A stretch of 35,265 bases of DNA from contig LPNZ01011614.1 of the NCBI GenBank assembly GCA_001655205.1, positions 1 to 35,265 of the forward strand, in the 5' to 3' direction. A program made the translations under genes and the position numbers. Below the pieces are notes generated by a model, which searched no databases, had not been told where the DNA came from, and saw only the letters and a program-made list of their open reading frames with translations. Position 1 is the first letter of the stretch; the number at the start of each line of letters is the position of its first letter. Of the stretch, positions 136 through 28,960 are shown one piece after another. This DNA is from Lenisia limosa (lineage: Eukaryota; Protista; Breviatea).

Positions 136-3100
136 CCTACATCCCTCTGCGACACACGTGACGATTACGTTGACGGCTGCGAAGGGATCACCTCTGACAA
201 GCCACGCTTCAACAGGAGGCCTATTGGTGGGGGGGGGGGTAATAGATCTTTGTGGGGTTGCTATTTTGAACTGTAGTCCTGTCTTCTAATTGGTTCTGCT
301 ACATACATTTACATACAGATACATATGATTATAGTGAAAACTGTGGACATGCATAAAACCGTGGACAAAAATGGGACTTTTCTTTCAATTTTGGGTAGTA
401 GTTTCCATATTTCACTTTGCTTCCAAATTATCGCACTAAATACTTATTTCTAATAAGTATCACACAACAACATGATAAGGGGTATCAAAAAATAAGCAAA
501 ATAACACCTTCATGATACTACAGTAATTCCTTCAAAATACATCAAAAACATGGACTATTGGTCAAGATCGCTCTTGTCATAACGCAAAGACGTTCTTGTA
601 TCAATAATTTTGAATTCCGCCATTCTCGGGTAAACTACGAGCATATAAAGAGAGAAATATTCAAAAATTGAGCAAAAATGAGCATAAAGTCAGCCAAAAA
701 CTATGCCAAAATATGATAGAAGATGCTAATAAATCAAACAAATTTGACACTCACTTTCTGTGCCTTTCCAAAACGATAACTGCCTTACTAATGCTGCATA
801 TAGCTACTTTTATTAGATGAGTATTTCTTCCACTGACTCCATTTTATAAGCTGAACATGGAAAATTCTTGAAAAAAAAACGTTACAGAAGTTTATTCAAA
901 TATCTCAAAACTAATACATTTTCTCCAAAAAAGGACTTCATATTCGAATTCTCCTGAAAAATCTGCGTTTCTGTAGTGGGGCACTTTAATAGGCCCAAAA
1001 TGCTATTATTCTGAAAGAGGGGGGTTTCAAACAATACTTTGGCGTAAAGGAAATTGGGTCACCCTGGGCGGGTTCGATTCTGATTAAAGTATCATTTTTT
1101 TTGATTTTTTTATTTCCTCTTTTTTCTCTTCTTGTTGGTCAAAATTGCCTTGTTTTGATGTTGTTGATAATCTTGAGCTCAAAACTGTCGATTTTCATAC
1201 TAAAAAGGGTCTTTTTGAAGCGATTTTATGTAATTTTTTGGGTTTGTCCACGGTTTTATGNNNNNNNNNNNNNNNNNNNNNNNNNNNNNNNNNNNNNNNN
1301 NNNNNNNNNNGGGATTTATCGATAAATGCTGTCTTTTTTGGGACCGTAGGGAAGCCCTTCTCATACACCATACTCCCTCCCTTTCCTCATATCTCCCCGG
1401 TCCCTTTCCTCATATCTCCCCGGTCCCTTTCCTCATANNNNNNNNNNNNNNNNNNNNNNNNNNNNNNNNNNNNNNNNNNNNNNNNNNNNNNNNNNNNNNN
1501 NNNNNNNNNNNNNNNNNNNNNNNNNNNNNNNNNNNNNNNNNNNNNNNNNNNNNNNNNNNNNNNNNNNNNNNNNNNNNNNNNNNNNNNNNNNNNNTCCCTT
1601 TCCTCATATCTCCCCGGTCCCTTTCCTCATATCTCCAGGTGAAACGGCCACACCGTGGAACGCCATTGCCGATACCGCCTCTTATTACCCTATCAACTAC
1701 CTTAGTCAGGATGCATGGAACTCCGATGGTCTTATGTACGGTGTGCATGGAGTATTATTTGGAACTCTTTTCTTTGCTGCAATGCATACAGTAACTGGGA
1801 TAAGTCTTGACCGATTTGCTCAATAATTTTCCATTGAAAATCTGTCAAGACTTATCCCGATCGCCTGTGCTAATATCTCCACCCAGAATTCGACAACCCT
1901 TACGACATCGCCTTCCCCTACCACATGGACAACCGCCTTCCAAATGTCGACCAACATGAGCTGTGAGGGAACCAATAACATGCTGTAGTACTACCTGTCA
2001 ACATAGCACCTAATTTGAGTCAGCATAGCACCTAATTTGAGCAGGTATGTTCCAGACAATGAGCTGAAGTACACGATCTTCGATGGTGATACTTACTACC
2101 AAAGTTACAGTACTTCAAAGTGGGGTGAAGTCATTCGTTCCTTATTTTCTTCCTTCCTTCCTTCCTTCCTTTCTTTCTTCTTCCTTCCTGCCCCTCTGTG
2201 TTTTTAATAGTTCAGAGTCAATCTTGGGATTCTTTTGATTTGTTTCATACCTCATCCCTGACGTTGGTTTCCAATATTCGTTCATCGAAATTTGGTCCCT
2301 TCACCACCCCTTCACCCCGCAGTTCACGCCCCGGTGCGGGCCTGGCATGGTGGTCGGACCAGCTGCAGAACAAGGACGGTTCCATTCTCATCGGCCAAAG
2401 TAACTCTCCCTCCATCGCCGTCGGCCAAGCCACTGCCAGTAACCTCAACCTGGACCAGGTGTCAACGTTGACTAACTTGCCTGCTGACCGATTGGCAGCA
2501 GCCAAGACTAATATCTATTCCTGCTTGTTCAACCAGAACAGACAGCAAACCACCTCGGTATGGCCGTCTTTGTCCAAATAAAGCTGGAATAGATGTGAGA
2601 TCTAAATGATTGGCCCAGAAAATCGCGATAATGGAACGAATGTCTTTTTTTGGGGGAAAGAGAGAGACCCTATAAATGATGCTGCGTAGACCAATCTTTG
2701 AACCCGTTTTGTGACCATTCAGACCTCTCGTGTGTCCTACCCTGACAATGTCTTCACCAACAACGTGTAAGCCCTTCCTTCCTCTCAGTACTTTCTATCA
2801 TCACACTGAATGTCCTTTTGATTCCATCCCCCCCCCCCAGTATTCCTGTGGACCCCNNNNNNNNNNNNNNNNNNNNNNNNNNNNNNNNNNNNNNNNNNNN
2901 NNNNNNNNNNNNNNNNNNNNNNNNNNNNNNNNNNNNNNNNNNNNNACAACGACCTCACGGCATACTCCTGTACCTCTGACCTCAACCTGGGTTCCTGTGG
3001 GTGGATACCTTTCTTCTTCATTCGAGCTGCTGCTTGGAGTATTCCAACGCTCAGGATGTTGGACTGTTTTTAGCGGACCGTTGTTATAGTTGTTTTCTCA

Positions 3101-6100
3101 TTTACCCTTTTATCCACTCACAATAGCCTCTCACCCTTGATAGCCGCAACGAAGCAGTGGACCCGTCACCAGAAGAAGGTGCCTGGGGGGGGGGGGGNNN
3201 NNNNNNNCTGAAAATGTAGATGATAGGATTGATGTGTGTGTCAACTCTGTCCAAAACAAAACACTGACCGTGTAGGTTGGAAGCTACCTGAACCTTTACT
3301 ACGCCCTTGCCCTCAGAGGAGGCTCGAAGGTTGGCTGCTGCCTTATGGGCTCATCTTGGAGGTTTCTAGCTGAAGCCAAAATCAAAACTGCTACGAAACC
3401 AGTATTCTTTTGACTATGAAAAGGGCGGTATCCTCTATACGTTAATATTCCAGCCGATGACGATGCTCCTGCCTCACCCCNNNNNNNNNNNNNNNNNNNN
3501 NNNNNNNNNNNNNNNNNNNNNNNNNNNNNNNNNNNNNNNNNNNNNNNNNNNNNNNNNNNNNNNNNNNNNNNNNNNNNNNNNNNNNNNNNNCGTGAAAATC
3601 GCACACAGTGTTGGACCCCGTGCCCCTTTCAAACACGAGGGCATGACAGCTATCCAGGAGGGTTCCTTATGTGGGGGGGATTGCCGGATTCGGAGATTAC
3701 ACCTTTTGTTCCTGTTTTCTCTTGATGGCTTTTTCTGAGAATTTCTTGGGGTTAATCCACACTGTTGGACCTGAATGGGACTATCATCGTATTTGGCTCA
3801 CCATGTAGTCAAGTACAAGAACCCAGCCACGGCCACTGGAGGATGCAACGGCATCACCAATGGACCCCACTACGTAACAGGAATTCGGCACGACACTACA
3901 ATCGAGGCCGAATGCCACCCTTATCAGGTCGAAACCATCAACGCCCTTCATGTCGGTGTATACACGTGCGAGGGGTCTGTTGTTCCAAACGAGTGGGTCC
4001 TTAGCCTCTGTTTACCCTGCTACAGAAGCGACTGGCCNNNNNNNNNNNNNNNNNNNNNNNNNNNNNNNNNNNNNNNNNNNNNNNNNNNNNNNNNNNNNNN
4101 NNNNNNNNNNNNNNNNNNNNNNNNNNNNNNNNNTCGAAATTACATCCCCTCTCCCGCCAGGATTGAGGATGAGCCTGAAATCGAACGGACCTGGGACACC
4201 TACCAGTTCACCCAAGATCACGGGTTGGGGGCTTTTAGTGTGTTTGAATCAGCACATCGATAACTACTTTATTAATAGGGCTTCCCTGCGGTCCAAAAAA
4301 GACCGGTCAAATATCGATAGTTATCGAGGATTCATCGAAGCCAATATTCACAGACCTTTCACTCCTCCCCCCAGCTACGGAGATTTCACACTTCGAATGA
4401 TGTCGGGAGAGTTGAGAACCAACTCTGGCGGACCGGGCAGCACCCTTGACTACAGGGTGGGGTGGCATCTGATTTGCATCACAGGGGGTGGATATATGAT
4501 ATTGTTATTGATAGAAACATCGGCAAACACCACCTCAACACATCCCATTGCACTGTTGAAAGACTGTTTGCCTACCATCTGACCCTATAGGTGGTGATCT
4601 TCAACAACGCCGGCTTCGACATGCACATGATCGGCCAGGCCATGGAGGGTGCCGAACTCAATGGAATGGTGAGGCCTTGTTGTTATTGGCCCTGTTGCCG
4701 CGATCTTCTTCGCAACTGTTTCGGATGCCCTTGTTTTATCAAACCTAACAAGGCAGGTGTTCCCACCCGGTGAGCATTTTGTGAACAACAAGCGTACTTG
4801 TCAAGTTCCCACTGCCTTCAAGTAAGCAACGGACCTTCTTATCCCTTTGTGGAGACTTCTTATCCCATTGTGGCGGCTGTATCATGGGGTGGACGGGTTT
4901 TAAGACAGGAAACATTTTCTGACACGCAGCTTCCTGAAGTGGACTATCCCGGCCGAGCTCGAGGGACACATTGACATCCATCCCTCCGACTACTACGCTC
5001 CGAAGCCGAAGCTTCTTTTCGAGAGAGGAGTGGGGGGTGGGACTATTAGGGATATTTCACTTCACGGGTTGGTTCACTTCACGGGTTGGTTCACTTCACG
5101 GGTTGGTTCACTTCACGGGTGGGTTCACGGGGTAGGGACTTGATTGAGTCGCTTTCCTCCAGCCTAATCCTTGCAGAACATCAACGTAGGAGTGATTGCT
5201 GACGGCGCCTCTGCCGAGTACTATCTTGAGGTATCATGGGGGCACTATCTTGAGGTACATATACTAATCCAAAAAAGCTAATATTGAACATAACTTTGCT
5301 TCACTCACCCCTCAGATTGATATTCTTGGCACCCTTCCCGACGACGTCCGCGGCCGCGTTTGGGATATTACTGTGGGCTTTATGGGATATTACTGTGGAC
5401 TTATATATGAGTTGTCTTTCGGGCTGGTTTTTTGTTTTTCTACGACCCCCCCCCCCCCNNNNNNNNNNNNNNNNNNNNNNNNNNNNNNNNNNNNNNNNNN
5501 NNNNNNNNNNNNNNNNNNNNNNNNNNNNNNNNNNNNNNNNNNNNNNNNNNNNNNNNNNGTTTTATTAGGCTTCTTTTGTTATGTTTTCAATCCCTTCACC
5601 CCAAAGTGCGAGCTGGTTCCGGAGTATTTCGAGAGCCTGCCCAAGCTCAACGACCCCACTCCCACCGGCTACCACACCTACGACTTCGCCTTCCCAAAGT
5701 GGGTATAGGCCTAACAATGGGGGTTCATAATTACAATACTAATGAGGGGAATTAATATATTCTCTGGAAATAGCAATAGGATATTGGCCAGTCTTGATTT
5801 GTAATGATGCCTTTTCTACGCTTTCAGCTTTTGGTCCTATATTTACGAATATAGAGCCAAGATTGGCTTCCCCTATGCTTCCGGCCACCCCCACGCCGGC
5901 AAGATTTATCATGTATACGGCCATGGCCAAATTACAAGTAAGTCACGTGATCTGAGACATTGATGACCTGTTTTCCTTAGTTATCCATCTTTTTATGTTG
6001 GGCATGTTTCCATTTCACTGTTACTTTCTGCGAAAACGCGTTCCTCTGTTAGATTACCCCTTTAGACATGGAAGTTCACTACCTCAAGGACAAGCATCTC

Positions 6101-9100
6101 CCCATTGCAGCCAAGCGCATTACCCTGGCTGAGCTTGAGCAGTGGGGGAGGGGGAGATTTGCTCCTGGCTTAGCGTTGTGTTTCTGACTTTATTTTTGTC
6201 TTTGATGTTGAATCCAATGAGTTGTTAAGCGCTTAGCAGCTCTCTTATTTTTAACATGTCCTTTCTGCCTTCCTCACCCCCCCCCCCCCCNNNNNNNNNN
6301 NNNNNNNNNNNNNNNNNNNNNNNNNNNNNNNNNNNNNNNNNNNNNNNNNNNNNNNNNNNNNNNNNNNNNNNNNNNNNNAAGGACTTTACTGAGTCGTGGT
6401 TCGCCAACATCACCACTCCTGGTAGGGTAAAGATAGTGATGAATAGATCTTCTCTATGGTCCCAAAATACACTGAATTTCTCGAGAAGTTCTCGATAAAT
6501 ATCTCTGATTGAGATATTCCGGTCTTTTTCGGACCGTAGGGAAGCCCAAGTGATGATAGTCAAGTTGCAGAGTCTGACGGAAATTGACCAAAAATCCCAT
6601 CGCCTCGCGGTTCCCTCTTCACTATAGTCTCATCAATATCTCTTTTAAACTTGATGATGTGGACGGCTTCGGTCAGATACTCCTACTACTCATTTCCCCA
6701 TCTCTTCTCACGCTGTAGAACTGGACTTCACCATTAGCGATGTTCCCGTGCCTAATTACAGCTACGTATGTGGAGGATTGAGTCAACGGAATTGAGGGCA
6801 AATAACTGCTTGAATTGATAGTAATAATAATGGACTTTCTCTCTAACCCTTCCAGCGCGGCCGTCTTCACGTCCACGTTGACCGCGAATATGGTACTGAT
6901 TTCCCCTTCAAGGTGCCCTATCCTGACGGTATGCTTAAGTCCTCTCCTTACTGCCCATTTGGGATTGCTCGCTACTCGATTTGGACTGTTACGCATCATC
7001 ATCGTCTAACCTCATAGGTCCTGACGAGGCTCTTGCGTACTTCGCTGTGCTCTACTACTCCAACTACCTTCCAACATACTCCAGTGTTCAGGTTAGTCTT
7101 ACGTCTGTCCTGGGTTGTTTGGACCAATACCAGAGGGGCCATAGTCATATATGATATATAGCTATACAAGTGTCAGCCTGTCCCCTAACTGTCCATTCAC
7201 TTTCCAGTCTTACCGAACGTACTTCGAATATGACAACCACTTTGGGACCGTAAGGGGGAGGCTTGGCATACTCGTCTTGGTGTTATGCTACAATACTGTC
7301 ACTTTACCTCCCCCCCCCCCNNNNNNNNNNNNNNNNNNNNNNNNNNNNNNNNNNNNNNNNNNNNNNNNNNNNNNNNNNNNNNNNNNNNNNNNNNNNNNNN
7401 NNNNNNNNNNNNNNNNNNNNNNNNNNNNNNNNNNNNNNNNNNNNNNNNNNNNNNNNNNNNNNNNNTCCTGTTTTCGGCGTTTCAATGCTCTCTCAGATCA
7501 CTGACGCTCTGGGGTCGCCCCTACCTCAAAATGTATGTGGTGCTTTGATATCAATTGAACAATTGATTTTGGGCTTTTTATTTCATAAATTTTCCAATCA
7601 CTCCCCCCCCCCCCCTTTCTCTCNNNNNNNNNNNNNNNNNNNNNNNNNNNNNNNNNNNNNNNNNNNNNNNNNNNNNNNNNNNNNNNNNNNNNNNNNNNNN
7701 NNNNNNNNNNNNNNNNNNNNNNNNNNNNNNNNNNNNNNNNGAGACGCCATCATTGTCAAAATCACGTGTACTGCCAGGTTTGTACCCCCGGAATAATTTT
7801 GTGGTTTGTGTTGTTTTCTTCAATCTCACTCCTTAGAAACAACGGAAACGGGGTGGCCTACAACACGGATCTTGCCTTCCTGTTGCCAATGGACATCACC
7901 CCGGTCGAGGAGCTGATCCAGTATNNNNNNNNNNNNNNNNNNNNNNNNNNNNNNNNNNNNNNNNNNNNNNNNNNNNNNNNNNNNNNNNNNNNNNNNNNNN
8001 NNNNNNNNNNNNNNNNNNNNNNNNNNNNNNNNNNNNNNNATACAATCCTCCGCTGAGAATGCATCCCTTTGTCCCTTGCTTCCTTTTTATCGCTGTTTTT
8101 CTGTCCTCCTTATCCCTTGCTTCCAGGGTACCATTGATCACGCTTTAGGACAAACTCAGTGACGGCAAGGCTGTCAAGAGAGTCGTGCTACACACTGAGC
8201 ATAAGGTTGGGGTATGATTGTCAGGTTACCACTGATTCACCAAACCCTAATAGTATAATTCTCTTCCTGTCTTGTTTACCCCCCACCCGTACCGTGATAT
8301 ACAGCTACCTCGTCACCCCCCCCCCCAGGTCAACCCCGGANNNNNNNNNNNNNNNNNNNNNNNNNNNNNNNNNNNNNNNNNNNNNNNNNNNNNNNNNNNN
8401 NNNNNNNNNNNNNNNNNNNNNNNNNNNNNNNNNNNNNNNNNNNNNNNNNNNNNNNNNNNNNNNNNNNNNNNNNNNNNNNNNNNNNNNNNNNNNNNNTGTC
8501 CGTGGTCCCGTCTTCCGAGCTCCAGGACGTGGGTCGCGGGGATAAGTCGAAATATCATAACGGGATGGGGGGGGGGGGATAAACTCTCTACTTCTCCTTT
8601 TTTGTTGTGGAACTGAACACAGTTAACACTTTGTCAACTGTTGCCAATCGTTTCATATATGCATCTTTCATCCCTTCCTCTCACTTGGTAGAATACGTAC
8701 ACGAGGAGCTACCCCACCATCTTCAGAAGAACCGTTGTGGTGGGCGAACCCTCTGGATTTTACCTTCTTTTTTGATGTTACGTTCATTTATTACGCCCCC
8801 CCCCCCGCATTATCCATTGCCATCACCCCTCAGGCTGGNNNNNNNNNNNNNNNNNNNNNNNNNNNNNNNNNNNNNNNNNNNNNNNNNNNNNNNNNNNNNN
8901 NNNNNNNNNNNNNNNNNNNNNNNNNNNNNNNNNNNACCTCACTGGCACTCCCAATGAGAGGCGAGTGTCACAGGTTATCGAAGAACCGGTTAAGAGTGGG
9001 AGGGGTATCTAGAGTCACAATTGCATATTGGCCCAATAAACAAGGCTGATTGAGGGTTCCAAGTCCGTTTACCCTGTTTTTACATTGCAGTTGAGTACTA

Positions 9101-12610: not shown

Positions 12611-15600
12611 ATGAATCCTCCCATCATATTCATACATTCCTTGTCCTTGTTGCTGTCATTTCCCTTACCTTCGGCCGAAATATCGGCTCACCCCGATCAA
12701 AGTCACTCACTTGAATCCTTGTTAAACATTTAGCAATGCTGAGTGCTGTGTCGAATCGCCGTCAATGGTTGGGCTTCTTTTGGAGTGACATTTGAGGATG
12801 GACAGACATATGTATGGTGGTATTTCACGGAGGGGTATTTGGCTCGTTCTCATAATAACACTCTAATTTTAAGGAAATAAAATCAAAAAAAAAAAAAAAA
12901 AAATATNNNNNNNNNNNNNNNNNNNNNNNNNNNNNNNNNNNNNNNNNNNNNNNNNNNNNNNNNNNNNNNNNNNNNNNNNNNNNNNNNNNNNGATGGTATA
13001 GACGGCTTCGGCCAGACACTACCATCTTGATTCCCCTTAATATATGGAGCTTTTGTAATCGGAGGAATCATGTTTCAATTTTCAAAACACTTTTGGAGTT
13101 GCTGTGTTGTTTTATATTAATGATATTTACATTTTTTTAAGAAAACATCGAAACACGCAAACCACCTGGGTACTCTCTCACGCCACAGGTTGGACTGGAC
13201 GCAATTTCGACCTTTAAGCTCACCCCATGCTCCGACTCTTCCCTCATCATCCCCGGGTGCAAGTACCAGATTTGTGGGTACAATACTCCTGGGATTGATC
13301 TCTGTTTTTTATACATGAGATATTATTTTGAAATGGTTGACTACACCTCACTTATGCTTTCTCAATAATGTTTGCTCGTAATGTATGTGAGACTCAAACA
13401 CACAACTTTTTTTGAGGCCTGGTACATTTTGCACTTCAGCTGACTCAATAGGAATTTCTGCAATTTCCCTAAATAACCTGTTTCATCCCAATTTCCTTTT
13501 TCCATTCCCAAGAAGTCCTTACTCTGTAGCGCTGGAGGAGTACCGACAGACGGAAGTGGCCTATAACTTCAATCTCGAAGTGGCTGATAGTGACACGTTC
13601 TCTTCGATCAGTGTGGCGTCACCTTCTTATTCGGCGGGATGGCAAGCGTGGATGAGATGCAATAAAGTCCGTAAGTTGTTGAGGAAATTCCGGCGGTTGC
13701 TCTTGAAATGGAATACTCACTTTGTCCAAAAAGTAACGATTGTTTGTATGTGTTTGATATTCCGTGTATGGTCACCCTCAGTCCTTCCAACATATCTTTG
13801 ATGCTGGTTTATTGACACTATTGTCACCCGACAGTCCCCCGTGGCCAGTCTCAGCGCGGGCGTTCTGACGGGTGCAAATCTCAATGAAAACGTTGACGGA
13901 ATTCTGGAAGTTTCTCTCAAGCAAGGTGACGTCAGCATTTCTCTTGAGTATGCCACTCTAATAATTGGTCTTGGGCTTTGTACGGTAATTAGTCTGTAAC
14001 TCTGGTGCGGTTAGTGATATTACCATCACTCGACATTATCTGGTACTGTCCGATCATTAAATGTGTCAGCATTTTTTATCATTATCAAAATTTCAATTAT
14101 CGATAATATTTGGCTTTATCGAGAATTCATTCAAACATCAATTACATGGCACATCAAGAGCCAGCATGACTTATTCAGACTTTCGGTAAGCAAATGCGCA
14201 TCGACATGTGAGACCTGCTCTGACGACTCCTGCATCCAGTGTAAAAGCCCGAATTATTTTTCATGTAAGACATGTCTCCCCTGCAGCGCCCAGAAGAGAT
14301 CGCAAGGATTTTTGCTCAACGTCTGCGGCCCGTGTCTCAGAAATTTCTACCATCTCAACGCCAACTCCCTTTGTACTGGTTGGGGGGGGGGGGCTAAATA
14401 CACTCTCTTCAGTCAAAGCATGCAAGAACAGTGGGTGAAAAACAAAGTTGCTTTTCTGCATTTACCCCCCCCCCTCCCCAGCCTTCACAACATGCACTGC
14501 TAGCAACCAGCCTTCACCACATGCACTGCTAGCAACCAGCCTTCACAACATGCACTACTAGCAACCAGCCTTCACAACATGCACTGCTTGCAACCAGTAC
14601 ACGGCAACCGCAGGATCCGCAACCTCCGACGCCATTTGTGGCTCGTGCGCCACTCAGAAGAGATCCAGCAAGGCCGGTGACAACTGCGACACGTGTCTGG
14701 CAGGATACTACTGGCCGGGAGACGGCGGCGTAAGCGCCACTTCAAAATGCTCGCGTGAGTGTGGGGGTTGTATCTAGGGCTTCCCTGCGGTCCGAAAAAG
14801 ACCGGTAGAGTATCGATATTTATCGAGGGTTTATCGAGAAATTTATTTTTGGGACCGTTGGAGAGTCAGCTGTGCCAATGCTTCTCCACATTAGCAATAT
14901 GCTCTCAGTGTATCATCCTGGGTCTGCAAAATCGTTGCTTGCTTTTGTTCCTTGCAGTCACCCCCCCCCCCCCNNNNNNNNNNNNNNNNNNNNNNNNNNN
15001 NNNNNNNNNNNNNNNNNNNNNNNNNNNNNNNNNNNNNNNNNNNNNNNNNNNNNNNNNNNNNNNNNNNNNNNNNNNNNNNNNNGTCTTTTTCAACTTGCTT
15101 CTCCCCAGATGTGACTTTCAAACAATCCATTTTCAAATAAGCAATATTGGGGTTTTAAAAATTTGGTGACAGCTGCGGGAAAGTTAACCTAACCATAGCT
15201 CATTTTGACCATTCAGCGCATCGCACGTGTCAAACGCTCGAGTACCCCCTGACTGCAAACCCCCACGCAAGACGTGGCCTGCGCACTGTGCAGCGCAATC
15301 AATAGGAAAGGCCACTCGATAAACTGTGGTACGTGCCTTCCGAACTACTTTCACACAACGACGGGAGCAAATGTCGGTGTCGCGGACGTCTGCATAGGTG
15401 GGACGGCTACACTGACTGGATTTTGCAACCTTGTGTTTGCCAACGATATGAACCGACTGCATAAATGATACCACATCATATTATTAACCATTAAACCATC
15501 AAACATCGGTGAATATTTTGAATCACATAAATGGCAAACTAACAGCCAGCGGCAAAAACATGTCCAAGCGACCCCAAGTACCTTGCTGAAAATTGCACTT

Positions 15601-16658: not shown

Positions 16659-17181
16659 TACATGTAACAACTCAAGATGAGGGCGATAGTGTGTATCAGT
16701 TTTTTTATTAGTGTGAGGGATGTGGGGCACTGTGTATGCTATTATTGCTATCGTCTGTATATTATGGTGTTGATGCTGTTGCTGCCAAAGCATTTGTGGA
16801 TTCCAGCATTGGTGGAATATTCAAGATTGTATGGGGACTTCAATATATTACCGAATTGTGCCTTTACTTTTCGTTTCTAAACGACTGATTTGCGATAATC
16901 CTGAAAAGAACGTTGGATTATGTGTCTAAACAACTGATTTGCAATTATCCTGAAAGGAACGTTGGATTAGAAAGATACATAAGAAAAAAAACTAGACCTT
17001 CACACGAGGCAACAATTAGATAATTCACACAAGGCTGTCAATAAAGCTCTCTAACGACTGATTGATTGATGATGACATAATACCACCCATTGGGGTCATG
17101 TGGTCTACAAAGTCATATTCAACTGCAAACGCTGGAAGATGAGAAATGGTATCAATAGAATCACCCCATTCTCCGTGGTGT

Positions 17182-20100
17182 TCAAACATCATGCAACTGG
17201 GCTATTATCTTCGACTCTTTAGTTACCCCCCCCCCCTCACCCAAAAACAGCTCCTTGAGCGCCGGGCTTTGAGCCAGGTCAGCGGCTGTATTGCCTCGAG
17301 AGTCCTGTATAGACGTGTCCACCCCATGTTGAAGTAGTAATCTGGCACGGGTGAGTGCCGAAGTGAAGTTCATTGTAAGTTAGCTCAAAAACCAGATAAC
17401 CCCAACCGAACATAGCAGAAACGATGTATATATAGCTATATATATATCAATGAGAAATAAAAAACAAGGTNNNNNNNNNNNNNNNNNNNNNNNNNNNNNN
17501 NNNNNNNNNNNNNNNNNNNNNNNNNNNNNCCAATCATTTGCCTTACAACTCTGTGCACACAGCGTTCTGCGTGCATGAATAAGGACAATAGCCCCTTCAT
17601 AATAACCCAGGTAGGCCCTCCTAAATCCGTCTTATGCCACAGATTCAGGAGGTGCCAGAGAGTTAGAATTGCAGACATCAAAGGCTATAATATTATCGTA
17701 AATATTGACAATGTCCTCAAAGGAGAACATATTATAAGTGGCTCAATAGTAGGACCATCACCACCCCCGTACCGACACACCCCCACGTGCCCCTTGGCCG
17801 CTGCTGCCATGAGGGGACTTCGGCCGAAGCGGTCAATTGCGTTCTCCAGTGAGCCCTAAGGAATAAGAAGATGGATGGCTGTAGAAGTGAGAAAAGTAGC
17901 CCCAAACTGAAAAGGTTTAGAGAAGTAATGGCTAGAACAAAATTGGTCCAAAGATTAGTCCAACTTTGTGGAATAGGCATGAGGGGCTTGCCCCAACATG
18001 AAATACCGCCGCTCTCCACACGGTTAGAAAGTTCAGAGATAAAGTTTCAACAAGAACCAGATACAACAACGGGTTCAGAGTTAAAAGCGTCCACCAAAAA
18101 CACCAAGTAGAAGCCCTCCATTAACATGTTATCTCCATCACCAACCAGATCCAGTAGAATGTTGACCATATCGGTGTTGCCAATCTCGGAGGCAGAATGC
18201 AGGGAGGTCCGGTTCAAATTGTCGACACGGTTCAACACCTATGTGGGGGGGGGGGNNNNNNNNNNNNNNNNNNNNNNNNNNNNNNNNNNNNNNNNNNNNN
18301 NNNNNNNNNNNNNNNNNNNNNNNNNNNNNNNNCAGTTGCTTCTGCAGCACCGCATTCCATCACATATTGATGAAATGGCACCTGGTAAGAGGGTATGAAA
18401 CAAACACTAAATAATAACAATGGGCCGCTGCAATAACACATTGTGGTATACTGTGGGATACCTCAGAAGGGATGTCACCGATGATGGAAGATAGGCCATC
18501 TATTACACCGCGCAGAACAGATGGGCCGTGTCTACACAGTAAAATGGCATGACGTTACAATGCGGCTCATACCCGGACATGATGGCATCCTGTAGTGGAG
18601 ACATCTCGAAAGACCGGTCCAAAAACGCTGCTTTTGGGAAGGCTGCAAGGGAGTTCTTAATTTGCCGCACACTGCCTGAAGCCAGTGCTGACTCGTAGCA
18701 GAGAACTAAATGACGTCAATAACATTGAACTGCGATATCACAAACAACGATTCAACCCCCCCCCCCCCNNNNNNNNNNNNNNNNNNNNNNNNNNNNNNNN
18801 NNNNNNNNNNNNNNNNNNNNNNNNNNNNNNNNNNNNNNNNNNNNNNNNNNNNNNNNNNNNNNNNNNNNNNNNNNNNNNNNNNNNNNNNNNNNNAGACTGC
18901 TTCTGAAGCTGCGACTGTGAGAAAGCACTAGAGTTTTACTCTGGTCTGAAAAAGACCGATAAAAAATCGACAGATTTCGAAGACTTATCGAGAAATTCCG
19001 TCTTTTTTGAACCGAAGCGAAGCCATAGAAAGGACTATGCGCTTCGATTATCAGGCATGTAGTATCAGATACATTTCAATGGACTACACGTAAAAAAACT
19101 GAGAATTATCAATACTGTGAGGCTTCAATGAATCTTTGAAAGCCCGTAACACAATTGGTCAAAGGTTGTCCCAAGGTGAGAGAACATGGAAGGCAATGAT
19201 GAAAGGTTCTGTCTGACAAAAGCCCTTTGTTTTGTTTGATGATGATATCTAACACCCCACCCCGCGATATCAAAGAATCCCACCCCACCCCGCGCCCCCC
19301 CCCACAACAANNNNNNNNNNNNNNNNNNNNNNNNNNNNNNNNNNNNNNNNNNNNNNNNNNNNNNNNNNNNNNNNNNNNNNNNNNNNNNNGTGGCCTTTTG
19401 CGTAACCGGAAGCCGTCGGGTCGGAAGGTCGTTCCGATCTGTCGGAAGCGCGGGGCTCTGTTCCGATGCCGACCACGGGACGGCGTTACTGAGTTTGTGC
19501 GTGTTGAGCCCGGGCTGGGGCTTCTCAATTTCGTTGCGTGGAGTATGGCGTGGCCGTTCATGCAGCTGCCCGGCCGATTTAACGTTCCTTCGCGACACCA
19601 GCTGGGGGCGGAACATGGACTTGGGCCCGGCAGATTTGGTCCGAACTGAACCTTCCGATGCTTCCGACACTGCTAATTTGGGTCCAGTGGACATCTGTCT
19701 GTTCCGAGCAGCACTCACAGGGCGGGAAAACGGCTTCTTTTCTGACAAGTCAGGATGAAGAGTTTCTATTACTCAGCCCACCATCATGAACCCATACCAC
19801 CCACCTTCACGGTTGTAGCGATCGGAGAGAAGGGGTTCGGATTGGGATGCGCCACTTTGCAGAGACGCCAAATGCAGTTCGGGGGGCTTCAAGGTGGGCA
19901 CGTCTATATCATGATTAGAGCTTTGAAGAACAATTTATTGAGTATTATCGAGAAATACCTTCTGGGCAGAAAATGCATAGCAAAAAGTTATATTTCTGGG
20001 CAGAAAATGCATAGCAAAACAGTTATATTTGTGCGACAAGTCATGACATGCAAGGCCGGTATGAAGCCACTCAAACCGGAGGAATTATTGGGGCAGCTCG

Positions 20101-23100
20101 GAGGTTCAGGCGGGCCTATCGATGACTGAAGCCATGTAGGCACGGCGGCGGAACAAGGCTCCGATGCCTGCGGTTGTGTGGACAGCCATGAAGGGAGTTC
20201 CTGGGGAATGGGCTTGTCGCTACCCCCATATTCTTCGTCATTAATCAAAGCGTCATCTTCTTGCCTGATCTCTTCCTTTTCGAGTTCGTCCATGTCAACC
20301 TTGATTTCTTCGCTTTCCTCTACTTCCTTCTCTTCCTCCTCGTATTCATCTGACACCTCAGACCCCTCGTAATAGTCCTCGTCCTCGCCATAGTACTCCG
20401 CCGTTTCGGACGCGGTTGCTTCGGCATCCATAACGTCGTCACTGCGGTATCATATCAAAAGCAATGGTGATATGTGTACGCTCTTTCTTAAAATACTCAG
20501 CAATGGTGATACGTGTACGCTCTTATGTGGTATTTCTTAAAATACCCCACCATACTCATCCCTCCAACTACCTGGTGAGCGGGCGGACTTCAATTTGCTC
20601 CATATTGAAAATGACCCTTAAATGATTAGTTATACTTAACCACTAAAAATGCAGAAATATAATAATAATCCAACCTCGGGAGTCACTTCACATTCGCTTA
20701 CTTTGAAGTTTTCCGTTCGCGTTCAGCTTGAGACTCAGAATTGGACGGACCAAACACTGCGTTCGACGCCTGAGGATAATGGTCAATTTAGAAGGGATAA
20801 ATGAGCATGGTAAGGGTCACGATGGGTGACTAGGGCTAGCCTATGGCCACAAAAGTTACTAGCTTTCAGGAATATTGCTACTTTTCAGTCATCCTACGAG
20901 GCAATGATACGACCAAATTGAGAAGGTATTGAACAGAGTACAATATCGATAATTCAAGAGATGGTATCAGAAAATTCATCCACTGAAGAGCAACATACCT
21001 TCACTGGCGATGGCTCCGGCTCGGCCGGTATCTTTGGCCTGGGTGTGACGTAAACATCCTCCATCGCCTCGACGGCGGGCTGTTGAGTTAGTTGCGAGAA
21101 TGTTCTCTGATGGTCATCCACAAGACCATCAGAATGCGAATAGTAGCTACTAAATTGTTTTAGCTTTGTCTCGGATAAAGAAAAGAATAGATTCTTGTAA
21201 ATGTATCAGGAACCCACTGGAGACAGTGAAAGAGGCGGACTAAGTTGTTTCGAAGTTGGCTCGGTTACATCTGTCAGAGGCTCAGATTTGAGCGGAATAG
21301 GCTCGGCGGTGTGTGAGAATGCCTCCGATTTCGCTGAAGGCTGGGAGTTGAGGCTTGGAGTTGGATCGGATTCAATGACATCATCTAAATCAGATTGGGA
21401 TTCGGGCTCAATTGTGGAAGGTAGAGTATCATCACCAGATGATTGAGTGGCTGTTTCTGAAGAAGGTGGCATAATGGATGTCGACACTGCTGGTGGCTTT
21501 GTAGATGATGATGAGGATGATCTTGTGGATGATGATGCTAATGGCTGTTGCTGTGCAGCAGGCTGTTTGATGGGTTCTAAAGACATCCTTGTTGAAGCAA
21601 CAGACGAGGATGATAGTGGTCGTCCGGATGATGAAGTTGGTCTATTTGATGACGAAGGCTTTAACGACTCTGACGGTCTTAGTCCAGATGCTGATTGCGG
21701 TCGCCTTGAAGAGGCAGAAAACGGAAGATTGGATGATGAGGATGTGGATGAGGATGATGATGGTGGTCTTTTTGCTGATGCCAAAGGCCTGACACCAGAT
21801 GATGATGACTGGGGTCTTCCAGATGATGATGACTGGGGTGGCTGTGTTGATGGTTGCTTTGTGGATGCTGAAGATGGTGATAAAGGTCTCCCTCCAGAAG
21901 ATGAAGATGGGCAAACTACTGCAACAGATTCGTACGTTCGACTCCTTGAAGCAGACTGAGGCCTCGTAGAGGGAGAAGAATTCCTTATTCCAGAAGAGGA
22001 CAGCGGGCGTGCGTTAGAAGCAGAACATGGGCGTGTTGTGGATGATGATGGACGATTAGATGATGCTGAGGATGGTCTTGTTGATGATGATGCTGATGGC
22101 TGTGGCTGTGCATCAGGGTGTTTGATGGGTTCTGAAGGCATCCTTGTTGAAGCAACAGACGAGGATGATGGTGGTCGTCCAGATGATGAAGATGGTCTAT
22201 TTGATGGCGAAGGCTTTAACGACTCTGACGGTCTTAGTCCGGATGCCGATTGCGGTCGTCTTGACGAGGCAGAAAATAGACGATTGGATGATGAAAGATG
22301 TGTGGATGACGATAATGGTGGCTGTGTGGGAGTGGATGATGATGACGAACATTCAGATGATAGCAGTAATGGTTGTTTGCTAGGCTCTAGGACTGACTTT
22401 GCTGCTGGCGCAGACGTGGGTCTTGATGAAGATGCAGACGAAGGTCTTGATGAAGATGCAAAAGAGGGTCTTGAGGAGGTAGGCATCACTTCTGAAGGCT
22501 GCTCTTTTTGCGGCTCAATTTTATTTGATGCAGAATGGGTGACATCCGCCCCATATAATGGTCCTGAATTGTGAAACGAAAAAACATGTCGATATCAGAA
22601 CATATTAAACAGTAACTGGTCAGGCTGAAGTCATCCACACTGTCACAGTATATGATATCTCATAATATATCATATAGCAATGAGAAATACAAAATAAGGT
22701 TATATTTGGTCGAAGCTCCACACCATCACGCTTTAAGAGATATTGGATACTTGTATAATATTAATTCACCCAAACATTTGCCTTACAACTGTGCACACAA
22801 CTTACTGCGTGGCTCCCCAGCATAGTCACAGTATACTAGATTGAGAAAAAGAAAAACTAGGCACAATCGTGTTAACCCCATCCCTTATGAGGAATTGGCG
22901 GTTAGGGAAACAGAAGAANNNNNNNNNNNNNNNNNNNNNNNNNNNNNNNNNNNNNNNNNNNNNNNNNNNNNNNNNNNNNNNNNNNNNNNNNNNNNNNNAT
23001 TGTGGACGGATGACAATTCTAAACAATAACAGAGATGAAAGCCTAAGTGACTACTGTGAAGAATGAAGGGCGAAGGGAAAACAGAAATTATTATTCATCA

Positions 23101-24190
23101 AGGGCGGGGATGAGATAAAAACACAGAACAAACCATCATGTTTCTGGGGGTGCCTAGGTGCGACAGGAGCGGGCAATTCTAATTCGTCAGTAAAGGAACC
23201 CAATTGGTTTTGGTGAAAAAGACCCCTTTTCAACACCGTCAGGTCTGATATGCTTCAATATCTCAATATTACTGGTTATAATATTCTAGCGCGGGTAATA
23301 AAATTCCTTGTTTTACCATAAGAGAGGCATTATACTATTTAGTATGTATAATATTACACGTTGCTATACGTAACATTTGATATGTACCCTCCCAGCTCCA
23401 GGCAACCTTTGAGCTGCGAAGCGGATATTTTGAGAGTCTTTGGCATGGCCTGGATAGTGGGGGCAGTTCGTGGTGAGACCCCGGGGTGCCGGGGGGACGG
23501 CTTACTCCGGGCCGATACCGGCGGTGACGGAGTGAAGCGGCTAGGTTGGGTTGACAGCAGACTATCCCGCGACGGGTTGGGTGCAGTACTGAGGGACTCA
23601 AAAGAGTCATCTTCCCATTCCATGGTGTAATCAGGGTCTTCGTGGTAGCTGTCGAATGATCTTGGATCTACGTCACCAAGCTTGATAACAGGCACAATGT
23701 TCTCTCCTTCCTGTTGGTCATATTTCGAAGAATGCGGGTCGTGTTTTTCAATATCATAATCATCTTCTTGTTCCTTTATCCTTTCATTTTCTTCTATTTG
23801 CAACTCTTCCGTCTCCTTATCACCCGCGACCTTTTTGATCGACATATCAGGTTCATGAGCCTCTTCAAGTTTGTCTTCTATTTTCTCTTCTTCTTCATCA
23901 CCTTCATCATACTCTTCTTCTCCTTCACTTTCTTCTTCCTCCTCTTCCTCTTCCTCTTCCTCTTCCTCTTCCTCTTCTTCCTCCTCCTCTTCTTCTTCCT
24001 CCTCCTCTTCTTCCTCCTCCTCCTCTTCCTCCTCTTCTTCTCCTTCTTCTTCTTCCTCCTCTTCTTCCTCACTCATTTCCTTATCTATTAATCGTGGGTC
24101 TCTCTCCAAGTACATCCCAGAAATGTTTCTTGTCAACGAATCCATTTTCCAAACTAGGCGATTAGAGGCAAACAGCAGAGACATGGGCAA
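17182..24190 (-). CDS. Large protein with N-terminal poly-Glu tract, long Ser/Pro/Arg-rich disordered region and C-terminal ankyrin repeats
   Basis: Long minus-strand exons at 24190-~23409, ~22564-~21210, ~20440-~20050 and ~19750-19390. Spliced C-terminus reads MSPLQDAIMSG.., NRVDNLNRTSLHSASEIGNTDMVNILLDL, DRFGRSPLMAAAAKGHVGVCR|LLLQHGVDTSIQDSRGNTAADLA (ankyrin consensus), and ends AQLHDV-TGA at 17182. Confidence 0.85.
17447..17575. repeat. Dispersed intronic repeat, copy 1
   Basis: CAATGAGAAATAAAAAACAAGGT...CATTTGCCTTACAACTCTGTGCACACA..CTGCGTG matches 22678-22812. Confidence 0.75.
18929..19027 (+). mobile_element. ~100-bp hAT-like MITE, subfamily B, full length
   Basis: TAGAGTTTTACTCTGGTCTGAAAAAG ... 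TTTTTGAACCGAAGCGAAGCCATA; TSD GAAAGCAC/GAAAGGAC (7/8); intronic in gene 3. Confidence 0.85.
22678..22812. repeat. Dispersed intronic repeat, copy 2
   Basis: CAATGAGAAATACAAAATAAGGT...CATTTGCCTTACAACTGTGCACACA..CTGCGTG; a fragment CAACTCTGTGCACACAACTT also occurs at ~16325-16344. Confidence 0.75.
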
Positions 24191-24767
24191 TATACTAAGA
24201 GAGAATTATAGAAACAGCACAATTGCATTGAAATACCTGGCACTACGACATGCTTTCTTTTTCAAAATATGATAATTAAATGATGACTTATTTCCTTTTC
24301 AACCTTCACCATTATTTCCGAGTACGGAACCTGACGTAACTCAATGTGTGACAAAAGGAAGCCTCCTCCCCTCCCCTCACCGTTTCTTTTTCAATAGATG
24401 TGTCAGAACAGAGTAATTGGGAACAAGAAGAGGGCTGGTGGTGCTTCCTCCATCGGATCAATGCCAACACAATACTTGTTGCTTGCCTGGTCAAAAAGTA
24501 CACAAGCCACTGAATCTCTTGAAAACTATTATGACAATCTGATAATCTAATAACGGTGAATAAATAACTTCTGATAAGGCTGTGAATCCGTGGGGGAGAG
24601 GGGAAAGGAAACCAATAATGTGGGATCGATGATCATGATACTGTTTTACATTTACTATATTATTCAATTTTGTCCTTTTTTTATGGAATATAAAAGATTA
24701 CTATTGCATTAGGTAAATAAGAGGTAGAGTGCTCTGAAATCACAGTATTAAGACTTCTTAATTTTCA

Positions 24768-26539
24768 ATGAAGCTCTTTTTACTGAGCTTACTGCTGTTA
24801 TTTAGTTTTTCTATAGCGGAAACATATTTTCCGGAGATAAATATCCCGCTTGTCAAGCAGAGTTTTGTTTTGAATGTTAACCATCGCCTCTCTGACGACT
24901 CCTATGTTCCTTTAGGAACTATCTCCGTGGATCTCGACATTAAAAAGCAAAAAGGTTGGTGTTACCCTCTTGCTTGGCAGTTCCCAACGCTCCAGGAAGC
25001 AGAGTTCAGACCCACGAAGCTACCTTCTCTGGCCGCGAGTTCACCGAAAAGGAATGGAAAGGCTTCATGAAAATGGCCAAGAAAGATGCTTATTTTGGAA
25101 TTGAAGTAGGGCTTCGTCTTTTGGAATTTGCAATGTTGTTTTCTTTGTTCTCCTCTTCTATTGTTGAGATGCTTCTTTTACTGTGTAGATTTCTGGGGAG
25201 GAAGCCGTTCTTCCGAAGCCAATTCGAACCTCCGTATTCTCCGTAAGTTGAGTTATGATATTTAGACAACGCTAACCAAAGCCTATGATATCCAACGATG
25301 CTATCCCTTTAATATCATATCAATACAATGTTGGAGGGGACTACCTTTTTTTATTAAATCGTATGTACTACATGCTTTTAAATCAAGAATACTCCAATAA
25401 AAGCGCATAATTGCCAGCTTTGTTGATAAGCATATTTTTTCACCACATTCAGGTATGCATTATTGACCCTCCCCCCAGTGCAGCCTCTTGAAGGACGACC
25501 TTCTATCCGGCCTGGACCTTGTTCTGCTGTCTACCGGCCGTATTATCGACGTGCATCTGTCAACGCAAAGCCCTAGGTGCTCTCAAAAACCGGTAAGAGA
25601 AGGATAATCATGAAGGAATTCGTATGTTCCGTTGACTGTAATGACATTCTTCCTCTTAACCCCATCCCCCCACAGGAAAGTGCTGATGCTAAGCCTCTGC
25701 AAATGGCCATCAATGTTAAGATCACTGACGCTGTTGCGTAAGCTTGGTGGAAATGACTAATTGTTACGAGTTGGTCTATTTCGAATTGTTTGATAAGGGT
25801 ACCATATTTTCTCAGTAAAATTGTATAACATTTCATTGGATCCAATGAGTTGCCTTACAACAAAAATCTAATTGTCATCCAACCATGTTACACGATATAT
25901 TTTCATTCAACCAGGGTGGAATCGGTCCCTTTCAGACCGCGCTTTGGCCCGGAGTCCTACCCCTGGCATGATGTCAATAACATGAGAACTTTTGGCAAGA
26001 ATGGAGGTGGGAGGGAGATGTAAATTTGACTTCTGTTGTTAAGGGTGAATTGAATGTGTTGTTATCTTCCCTTTTTCTTTCTTAAAATAATGGTCTGGCC
26101 GGATTTATCAAGGTATATTACTCCCGATATTGCTCATTTCATATTCCTTTTTTTACCACGGGATGATACATAATTGAACGAATAATAGTTACCAACTTTA
26201 ACATGAGAGTGGACGGCTTCAGCCCTTTTTAATGGGGCAACAAGTATCCGAGATACCTTGGAGTATCAAACGCTGACATTGCTAATGAATGAAATCCTCT
26301 CTTTTCCACTAACTTGGCAGTAACTAACGAGCCCACTGCCCCCATCCCGATCAACGCTGAAGCAATCCCCCCGGTGGAGGAAAAGACGTTCTTCCAAAAG
26401 TACTGGCACTTCATTCTGCCTGCCGCTGTCTTCTTATTGGTAGGGGATTGGAATTATGTATACCGTTTTGGAGTATGCTAAAGTATGCTGAACTTGGCTC
26501 ATGCATTTAGTTACAAATGGTGATGAAGTAAGCGGCTGA
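24768..26539 (+). CDS. EMC10: ER membrane protein complex subunit 10
   Basis: Signal peptide MKLFLLSLLLLFSFSIA; luminal exons join in phase; diagnostic juxtamembrane motif PVEEKTFFQKYWHFILPAAVFLL (~26370-26439); final exon VTNGDEVSG-TGA. Confidence 0.85.
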
Positions 26540-26776
26540 AGACCCCCCCCCCCCCNNNNNNNNNNNNNNNNNNNNNNNNNNNNNNNNNNNNNNNNNNNNN
26601 NNNNNNNNNNNNNNNNNNNNNNNNNNNNAGACTTCAGAAACTATTGTACATTTACCATGATCACATGATCTACATTGTCGGAGGATCGTCCATGAGACCC
26701 AGACGTTCAAACTCAATACGGGCGTAATTCTGGGGGATTAGGAAGTCTTTGAGGCAAAGAGAGAACTCTATAAAGA

Positions 26777-27859
26777 TTAATTACACGTAGATAATATGTA
26801 ACTGTCATCTCCAATGACTTGAAAAGGTATGAAGATTTGAGCAAAAAAGCAACTCACGACAAAACAACTACATACTTGGATACTGGTGAGTTTATCAATC
26901 AAAGTTTGAATGCCGAGCTGTACGATCTGCTTAGCTGGCATCACGCCTGATGACTGGGGTAGGGGGAGTAATAGGAAATTTCGACGAAGAATATTGGAGT
27001 AAAGGTACAAATCAATTGAAAAATCTGAAACCTAACAAAATGAATGAAACAAACCAGCGGGGTGTATGTTGGGAGAAGAGTTGAGTGGGATGAATATGTC
27101 TTGGGTGGAGTTATCGATATTATTAGTACAGATATTATGAGGAAAAGTTCCTTTTCTGAAAAGAGGGGGGCAGGATGGGCAGGATAGATTTTCTCAAAAG
27201 GGATATTTGATTATTGAACTAAAAATCGAAAGGGAAGATAAAACAATACGAACAAATGAACCCACGAACCTCTACTGTAAACCTGAAGATTTCACAGCCA
27301 GTCTTTTTGTCTTTCCTTGTTGTGATTGTGACAACAGGCTGCTTGAAGTCTAGTTCTCTCTCGGCAAACTTCTTACATTCATTGCAGAACATGCATCTGC
27401 CATGTGAGGCTCGGTTGTTCAAACGCCAATATCCAACTGTTTCTGCGCTCAATAGGCAGTTTTAACATCACCACCCCCACCTCCAAACGTCCTCAACATC
27501 GACATTCTCAGCGGCCGTGGTGGTAAGGGCCTTTGTGGGACATGACTCAATACTACGGATGGTGAGTCAGAAGCAACCCACTGAAGCGCGAAGGTTGACA
27601 AAAAGTGACAAAGCTTAACAAACAGCTCAAAAAAAAGAATATAACCTTACAGAGCCTTCTTTTGTGGGAAAGTCAACGTAGCGACTGCGTGCTGATTGAT
27701 TGTAATCTGTGGCTGGTACGCGAAGACACAGCACGTGACAGGAGACCACTTGGCATGCTCCTTTCCGATACCCTGAGAGGTGTCAATGTTGATTCCTCTT
27801 CCGATCTGTGACTAAATAGACACAATAAACAATAACAACAGATTCCTCGAGATAGAGAT

Positions 27860-27914
<55 letters not shown>

Positions 27915-28960
27915 AACAGATTTAAACTGGCCGATGCGTCAATCCTGTCACTCTTCCCAAGTAGTAAATACCAAGGATACCGGCGTTGAGCAAAATACGT
28001 ACCTTCTTTGCGACAGCGCGCAGTTTGATGCTCTGGCCTTTCCTGAGTTTGCATAACACAATTGGCGGATCAATGGGCCTCACGTCATTGCCAGTCTCCG
28101 TGTCTATTAGGTTTGAGAAGTGACGAGTATGTCCAAGTAGGGACTCTCTTCGATGATTGATGGAAAGTCCATGTGTATTGAGAATCTATACTTTCTATTT
28201 GACCTTCCTAACCTCTATCCTCCCATTTGACCTTCCTAACCTCTATCCTCCCATTTGAGCTTCTCCGTAGTGACCAGCATTGTCTCGTCAGTGTTGCACG
28301 TCACGTCGAGACTGAATCCCACAGAACACATATCACAGGTGTCGGCACAGGTGCAATCCTTGGGGGGGGGGGGTAAATGGAAACTAATGAAACAAAAAGC
28401 CGGAATCAACTTGAAAATGGATATTTATCACACTAAAAGAAAAAAAAACTCTGATGGCTACCAANNNNNNNNNNNNNNNNNNNNNNNNNNNNNNNNNNNN
28501 NNNNNNNNNNNNNNNNNNNNNNNNNNNNNNNNNNNNNNNNNNNNNNNNNNNNNATGGTGGGGTGAAGTGGACATAAATAATCAATAAAACACTCAGCACA
28601 CCAAACAGAGATTATGATAGGAAGCCTACTCTAGTGTATGCAAAGCTGTTGACTGATTTTGAGACAAGGGGAACAAGACCGAGACGATGGGCCAGAAACT
28701 CGTCCGCCATAACACTACTGTTCTGATGGATGTCGACAAGGTCAATAGCTATGGTCGGCTACATTGGTTATTTCTGATTTTTGACCATTAAATGTCAAAA
28801 TAGATTCAAGAGAGAGCCAGCAGACCACTTCAGCAATGATAACTCGACGAAGAGCGTTTGCGACTGAAGCATCCGTTCCTGTTAGCAGAAATACAATTTT
28901 TTCATCTGTCTGTTGTTTAATCTCAACACGAGGACTTCTAGCCTTTGGAGCACCCTCCAT
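26777..28960 (-). CDS. RPB3: DNA-directed RNA polymerase II subunit RPB3
   Basis: [45 protein letters not shown]; [23 protein letters not shown]; Zn loop [21 protein letters not shown]; [32 protein letters not shown]; FRFTVE|[11 protein letters not shown]. The Zn-loop CxC..CxxC favours RPB3 over the paralogue AC40. Confidence 0.95.
27848..27912. repeat. (GAGATA)n/(GA)n microsatellite
   Basis: Directly visible in an RPB3 intron. Confidence 0.9.

Follow-up and report, generated by a model that had tools for sequence, protein, structure and literature searches.

Why would a protist carry long, uninterrupted runs of G just after the donors of its introns and long runs of C just before the acceptors, and do the two kinds of run act together? 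The question is raised by a stretch of 35,265 nucleotides (nt) from the breviate Lenisia limosa (contig LPNZ01011614.1 of assembly GCA_001655205.1; the whole stretch is called the window below). A preliminary description had reported such runs on both strands and had suggested that stems between the G and C runs might bring the two splice sites of an intron together, or else that the lineage may use a U2AF with a preference for C together with a reader of G runs or a G-quadruplex. The reading that we prefer, at a probability of about one half, is that the runs are two independent tracts at the two ends of ordinary GT-AG introns, and that they are hypermutable homopolymers, in part carried by transposons.

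The window is contig C11614 in a 49-Mb assembly of 11,727 contigs. It consists of intron-rich eukaryotic DNA with a G+C content of 42%, genes on both strands and 29 gaps filled with N. Runs and gaps were counted in a local sample formed by the window and 20 arbitrary contigs (L025–L044), which contains 88 gaps, and repeat copies were counted in 153 kb of local sequence. Genome-wide statements are pattern counts across the assembly with mirrored controls. In the polarity tests each run was oriented as G and its flanks were then compared; within the window, runs were oriented by the strand of the host gene. All readings were confined to sequence between gaps, and none was made across N.

The G and C runs cited in the preliminary description are all present where it placed them. 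Their number is far from what base composition would give, since the window holds 24 G or C runs of at least 9 bases whereas 200 order-1 Markov simulations gave 0.25 on average and never more than 2. The runs and the features that go with them are listed here, where A and B denote two families of repeats described below and NODE_1274 is a second, gap-free contig.

227–239, plus strand: GT followed by G11, a donor-side run; the frame is open up to 226
2828–2840, plus strand: C11 followed by AG, an acceptor-side run
3179–3197, plus strand: GTGCCT and G13, adjoining the gap at 3198–3207
5446–5458, plus strand: C13 cut off by a gap to its right
6277–6290 (C14), 7310–7320 (C11), 9604–9616 (C13) and 14961–14973 (C13), plus strand: other C runs cut by gaps
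7561–7615, plus strand: family A copy (7561–7598) ending in C13
8316–8328, plus strand: C11 and AG
8567–8806, plus strand: G12 and C11 as a pair in one intron, 20–45 nt from either splice site
9526–9616, plus strand: family B copy ending in C13, then a gap
9976–9989, plus strand: C12 and AG
10473–10619, plus strand: stacked B-like and A copies, ending in C7 and AG
10689–10701, plus strand: GT and G11 in unique sequence
10882–10898, plus strand: GTATGT and G11 in unique sequence
11722–11790, plus strand: family A copy; its C tract is interrupted (12 C in 15 nt) and leads to AG
14379–14597, plus strand: GTT and G12, later C10 and TCCCCAG, then a 29-nt tandem array (4.1 copies)
17226–17240, minus strand: GTGA and G11, a donor after an ankyrin-like exon
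18239–18375, minus strand: 5' part of a long-form family A copy (18333–18375), a gap, then C11 and ACATAG before an ankyrin-like exon
18756–18768, minus strand: G13 in sense; the preceding GT lies in a window gap and was read from NODE_1274
26543–26555, plus strand: C13 between a plus-strand gene and the 3' end of the RPB3 gene; the real sequence downstream has an AG 8 nt further on
30534–30546, plus strand: G13, 12 nt after GT, adjoining a gap

When these runs are read in the sense of their genes, each of the 27 runs of at least 7 bases is G and in the 5' portion of its intron, or C and in the 3' portion, and no run of the opposite polarity occurs in the window. A GT ends 0–4 nt upstream of 9 of the 11 sense G runs, and an AG starts 0–5 nt downstream of 7 of the 9 sense C runs whose downstream sequence can be read. 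The base directly before a sense C run is A in 9 of 14 cases; the C run mostly starts right after the A of a yUnAy-like motif, and this A is a possible branch point. The reported flip of polarity with gene orientation is borne out by the minus-strand cases at 17226, 18245 and 28362. Three runs do not lie against a splice site: the G12 at 8567, the C11 at 8796 and a G14 hidden in RPB3 intron 2 are 20–125 nt within their introns.

The polarised architecture linked to splice sites also holds genome-wide. Runs of at least 10 bases number about 16,000 in all, of which about 13,000 have a readable 5' neighbour. When runs are read as G, G+C is 0.48–0.51 in the 5' flank and 0.38–0.39 in the 3' flank (p = 5e-8; 21 versus 2 in the paired comparison). 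The RPB3 gene has a G+C of 0.48 in exons and 0.40 in introns, so that the richer 5' flank is exon-like. Upstream dinucleotides agree with this. Among the first 100 T-preceded runs listed (those of the lowest-numbered contigs), GT was the commonest with 43 occurrences, and CT, which before a run read as G is the reverse complement of an acceptor AG, had 29, compared to 19 and 20.5 expected. The main upstream contexts of A-preceded runs are GTGA, GTA, CTGA, CTGGGA and CTA. In the local sample, GT or CT lies at most 6 nt upstream of 77% of runs versus 48% in the background (p = 1e-5), and the mirrored downstream control gives 55%.

The same polarity is found in G and C tracts of 5 nt and of 6–8 nt, and A and T runs have none. 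Lengths, however, do not form a continuum. The local counts for lengths 6, 7, 8, 9, 10, 11, 12, 13 and 14 are 68, 13, 1, 6, 5, 16, 12, 16 and 4, with a peak at 11–13, and A and T runs decay smoothly without a second mode. The long runs thus mark the extreme end of a composition that is general among intron ends, and yet form a discrete length class. They are not an obligatory signal, since only about 10–20% of intron ends have one.

A link between a run and actual splicing comes from the gene for the RNA polymerase II subunit RPB3 (26670–28960, minus strand), which Pfam identifies and which is the best anchored gene of the window. Its exons were searched singly. Exon 2 (43 amino acids) is 100% identical to part of a 313-residue protein, P0001, which is the open reading frame of a Trinity transcript in EukProt EP01086, Lenisia limosa. 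Exon by exon, all nine RPB3 exons in the window match P0001, and the junctions were taken from this transcript protein together with the single-exon matches. The next-best relatives of exon 2 are amoebozoan, apusomonad and fungal proteins, which fits a breviate, and the species label of the window is probably right; the DNA is not human. Two RPB3 introns bear on the runs.

28359–28629, minus strand: RPB3 intron 2, 258 nt long in the gap-free contig; acceptor confirmed by the transcript
26954–27269, minus strand: RPB3 intron 7; acceptor confirmed by the transcript

In sense order, intron 2 contains a G14 about 125 nt inside (within the gap at 28465–28553), an A-like repeat copy, a C12 (28362–28373) and AAG, and its acceptor reads ATTTAC, C12, AAG. 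The exon 2/3 junction of P0001 (FAYTR|DCTCAD) falls exactly at the C12 and AAG, which shows that an AG beside a C12 is used in splicing. The 3' end of intron 7 is a family B copy (26973–31) with an interrupted C tract. P0001 also confirms one donor, GTGGGGG, and two acceptors whose C tracts are interrupted. Beyond GT, the RPB3 donors have little in common. Two further observations concern this gene. Intron 4 contains a (GA)n/(TC)n microsatellite (27849–27913), and a second RPB3-like piece lies on another contig (C9962:1908–2081, minus strand). It is 53% identical to residues 22–79 of P0001, has one internal TAG, and could be either a paralogue or the RPB3 of another eukaryote represented in the assembly, which is one reason to call the species label probable and not certain.

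A contig from a metagenome assembly (ENA ERZ3820729, NODE_1274), which has no N, bears on whether the runs exist as written. It is 100% identical to window positions 18739–30512 and has the same runs at the same lengths (C13, C9, C13 and G12), and it shows an additional C14 (plus strand) that is hidden in the window gap 28465–28553. NODE_1274 probably derives from the same reads, and its independence is that of the assembler only. Five window gaps are bridged colinearly by it, with real lengths of 60, 56, 37, 48 and 76 nt in place of 125, 79, 80, 73 and 89 N. The number of N exceeds the real length in all five, by 13 to 65 nt, and N lengths, as well as reading frames across gaps, are therefore unreliable. 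Bridging covers 18.7–30.5 kb; the gaps at 1261–4133 remain unbridged, and searches with the open reading frames at 2198, 6676, 13412, 14063 and 17575 and with two from other contigs gave no record that would bridge a gap.

Contact between runs and gaps is one-sided. A run adjoins the left side of 10 of the 29 window gaps and the right side of none; in the local sample, a G or C run of at least 9 bases stands directly left of 25 of the 88 gaps and right of none, and of all runs in the genome about 38% stop at N or at the end of a contig, on the 3' side of the plus strand. This is an effect of directional assembly or gap closing, in which runs stop the gap closer and further runs are hidden. Transcript-confirmed exons contain no runs. 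Runs of this kind break short-read assemblies and will mislead gene prediction in this genome.

Where do the C runs come from? Many runs read as C are preceded by one of two related modules. The core of family A is ...GAGTTGATTTGGGC, a T run, and GTTTCATAAATTTTCCAATTTTA, with long forms of about 150 nt, and family B ends in ...GAAATTTCCTTCGTTTTA. A 100-nt probe gave at least 1159 first-look candidates genome-wide, of which the best matches are 88–94% identical across about 75 nt; the range for the top 40 is 88–100%. The local sequence contains 26 copies of family A and 12 of family B. In the window, eight of eight copies (seven model hits and the A fragment 18333–18375, read by eye) lie in the sense of the host gene, five in plus-strand and three in minus-strand genes, and two of them form the 3' ends of RPB3 introns 2 and 7, at the transcript-confirmed acceptors.

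Copies stack at acceptors, each ending in a C tract and AG (A-A-B in one instance, L006). The tail that follows ...TTTTA ranges from pure C11–13 through interrupted C tracts of similar total length down to almost none, and no relation was found between C-tail length and the match score of the copy to its family model. Similarity among copies reaches the acceptor only, and the 5' ends are variable and lie within introns. No target-site duplication, including one of the AGGT type, was seen at the units examined, nor any consistent flank. Behind C(n)AG, the exon starts with G in 15 of 29 cases and with GT in only 3. Terminal inverted repeats were not seen, and an autonomous partner was not searched for. 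In the metagenome collection a 30-mer that included the C run had no match, and an exact 21-mer of the repeat matched only 28 unrelated bacterial contigs of low G+C. In a separate case (contig C860:830–864), a long family A copy (TGGGATGCGGTGC) has C(n) immediately before its 5' end; runs can thus flank the 5' side of a repeat too, which is what stacking of copies behind an older C tail would produce. Donor-side G runs lie in unique sequence, and their flanks share nothing with each other. Repeats account for part of the C runs and for none of the G runs examined.

In the preferred reading, the runs are genuine genomic homopolymers at the ends of about 10–20% of the GT-AG spliceosomal introns of this amorphean protist, and represent the extreme, discrete class of a polarity that places G just inside the 5' splice site and C just before AG. 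The C run may serve as the pyrimidine tract or as the spacer from branch point to AG, presumably bound by a reader protein. The G run, by analogy with known G-run splicing enhancers, could be a donor-proximal intronic signal that helps to define weak GTNNNN donors. Two origins would be combined. Some C runs are the 3' tails of the abundant, sense-oriented, 3'-anchored, introner-like repeats A and B, which bring along a TTTTAC motif that resembles a branch site, the C tract and an AG. The remaining runs, including all donor G runs examined, would have arisen by threshold slippage of intron ends that are rich in G or C, and slippage beyond a threshold of about 8 nt would keep them at 11–14 nt. 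Such a threshold is suggested because the length distribution is bimodal.

Several observations weigh against this reading. A general slippage threshold is insufficient, because A and T runs have no second length mode. At both kinds of intron end, 60% of G runs have a T after them, and introns contain strand-symmetric G(n)...C(n) units; slippage accounts for neither, and both hint at an insertional origin. The repeats are a minority explanation, with only 7 of the 60 long local runs touching a detectable A or B copy, although this is an undercount because the flank in question is often a gap. The donors next to G runs are placed only by open frames and by ankyrin-like exon content. Runs at gaps are truncated, and run lengths can be read up to about 14 only.

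The serious rival to slippage is an insertional origin, in which the runs mark the ends of inserted DNA and a lone run is what is left of a decayed or truncated copy. We regard it as possible, and clearly less probable than the combination of tails and slippage. The inserts could be several non-autonomous elements with common terminal inverted repeats of the type G(n)/C(n), or they could be C-tailed complementary DNA or linear DNA; either variant would yield strand-symmetric G(n)...C(n) units. In its favour, the runs appear to be born long, as a discrete class of 11–14 nt, and G(n)...C(n) units occur as blocks within older introns. Unrelated repeat families carry the same C tail, interrupted C tracts of equal total length resemble decayed runs, and T after the G run and A before the C run recur at both kinds of end. 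However, G(n)...C(n) pairs are rare, donor G runs have no common flank in their unique sequence, and the missing target-site duplications do not speak for insertion at the units examined. The spacing from splice site to run varies from 0 to 6 nt, and C-tail length is independent of how well a copy matches its family model.

It might also be that the homopolymers of 11–14 nt are birth marks of the making or remodelling of introns, although we consider this improbable. Repeats and arbitrary fragments would arrive with homopolymer-tailed 3' ends, leaving G(n)...C(n), and a terminal transferase or a reverse transcriptase, for example, might add the C. In this lineage the spliceosome would then have come to use the ends of such tailed inserts, one as a donor-side enhancer and the other as a pure-C pyrimidine tract.

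Equally improbable in our judgement is that the runs are a neutral by-product without any role in splicing, with slippage simply expanding G and C homopolymers at intron ends rich in these bases. Short tracts share the polarity and could be the seeds, runs are scarce at 8 nt and rise again to a second mode, which is what a slippage threshold would give, and runs occur in a minority of introns only. Against this, A and T runs, though commoner, have no second mode. About half of the runs lie within a few bases of GT or AG, and C runs exactly fill the space from the branch-like A to the AG.

The first mechanism proposed in the preliminary description was another, in which the G run behind the donor base-pairs with the C run before the acceptor, so that the two splice sites of an intron come together. 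Where both runs occur, the predicted fold is indeed a G:C stem of 12–13 bp. The stretch 14379–14481, which had been read as a whole short intron, is predicted to fold at −41.9 kcal/mol (z −2.7) and RPB3 intron 2 at −74.3 kcal/mol (z −1.6), and there are about 240 such G..C pairs genome-wide. The start of that short intron (GTT and G12) stands, whereas its end probably lies elsewhere, as an acceptor at 14481 puts the frame into a stop. The 29-nt unit at 14478 comprises an acceptor and an exon start; three decoy copies, with in-frame stops, precede about 14568, and the intron from 14379 probably ends there, at the last copy of the acceptor array.

Co-occurrence of the two runs within introns was the refutation test set in the preliminary description, and stems that join splice sites fail it. 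Homopolymers have no covariation signal that could bear on pairing. At distances of 40–300 nt, G10..C10 has 502 matches and C10..G10 has 1208, so that the order needed for pairing is 2.4 times rarer; at 301–500 nt the numbers are 771 and 904. The density of C-then-G is flat with distance, while that of G-then-C is halved at intron scale. Only about 240 of about 16,000 runs have a complementary long run within 300 nt downstream, which leaves about 3% of runs partnered, and among the introns of the window that bear runs, most bear only one. The G run of RPB3 intron 2 and that of the intron at 8567–8806, moreover, lie deep inside, where a stem would bury the C tract and not join the sites. A G(n)...C(n) intron reads identically on both strands, and the G-then-C order alone therefore says nothing about the transcribed strand; strand information comes instead from the splice site that each run adjoins and from the side on which the exon lies. 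These data show that the two intron ends are largely independent, and as a general rule pairing is close to refuted and very unlikely to be the explanation. The deficit of G-then-C may reflect a biological avoidance of stems that bury the acceptor, or a loss of hairpins in short-read data.

An artefact of sequencing or assembly, such as poly-G read tails or gap-closer filling, we hold to be very unlikely. It would be in line with the 38% of runs that stop at a gap or contig end, in every case on the 3' side of the plus strand, with the many contigs that start or stop in a run and with the reads that both assemblies probably share. Against it, another assembler's gap-free contig keeps the same runs at the same lengths, the runs are placed exactly relative to splice sites and sense strand, C tails of variable length sit at one fixed position of a repeat family, and transcript-confirmed exons are never interrupted by a run.

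Other features of the window deserve mention. Short tandem duplications (17–29 nt, 2–4 copies) lie exactly on exon-intron junctions, at 28197–28263 (RPB3 intron 3), 14478–14597, 88–137, 5056–5128 and 1378–1437. The 28-nt unit of the RPB3 duplication covers the exon 3 donor, and the transcript uses copy one. Junction duplication seems to be a second route of intron growth here. A palindromic element (GGGCTTCCCTGCGGTCCGAAAAAGACC ... with an ATCGAT core) that resembles a miniature inverted-repeat transposable element is found in introns in both orientations, at 1–60, 1311–1350, 4277–4340, 6480–6545, 10155–10254, 14775–14860, 18940–19020 and 32625–32700, and it also lies between some G..C run pairs elsewhere in the genome. 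Large low-complexity coding stretches occupy 19390–24190 on the minus strand, and include a serine-rich open reading frame of 427 amino acids with internal 265-nt repeats (90% identity) and a glutamate-rich one of 278 amino acids built on a (TCT)n-like array. Rfam had no match in the window, Pfam gave nothing for the long open reading frames of other contigs, and a protein atlas did not resolve the taxonomy.

How do these intron ends compare with known systems? Intronic G runs (GGG) are splicing enhancers of short vertebrate introns, where they are read by hnRNP H/F or U1. The tracts described here are likewise sense-strand G tracts, a few to tens of bases after the donor. Unlike the vertebrate enhancers, each is one uninterrupted homopolymer of 10–14 nt, they form a discrete class, and they occur in a protist, in which they are known from sequence alone. 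The C run resembles a polypyrimidine tract in that it follows the A of a TTTTAC- or CTCAC-like motif and ends 0–5 nt before a used AG; it differs in being pure C and not U-rich, in being present in a subset of introns, and in its highly uniform length. With introns whose ends pair, such as the non-conventional introns of euglenids and structured yeast introns, the likeness is that a few hundred introns here could form a G:C stem, but here the runs at the two ends are found together no more often than by chance, in introns of the conventional GT-AG type. If the preferred reading is right, the ordinary GT-AG introns of a deep and little-studied lineage of Obazoa provide a natural example of a pyrimidine tract made of C alone and of long G runs on the donor side.

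The closest known kind of system is the introner. Introners and introner-like elements have been described in Micromonas, in Aureococcus and, as introner-like elements, in fungi (10.1101/2022.06.06.494994; PMC12130899), and they are recognised by similarity that extends up to both exon-intron boundaries (PMC12130899); here it extends to the acceptor only. We found no mention of poly-C or poly-G termini in these two introner surveys, and in the literature searched, outside which the original Lenisia paper lies, we came across no account of introners with a poly-C tail or of intron ends with G12 or C12. As with introners, the copies of families A and B are many (hundreds to thousands), lie in introns of unrelated genes, are all in sense, and are similar right up to a used splice site. 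In contrast to introners, they are anchored at the 3' end only, with a variable 5' boundary that falls short of the donor, end in a homopolymer C tail, and stack head to tail at acceptors. This would be a system akin to introners whose repeats bring only the 3' half of an intron and stack up at acceptors, together with a discrete class of homopolymers whose origin, if the runs are what we propose, bears on how new intron sequence arises.

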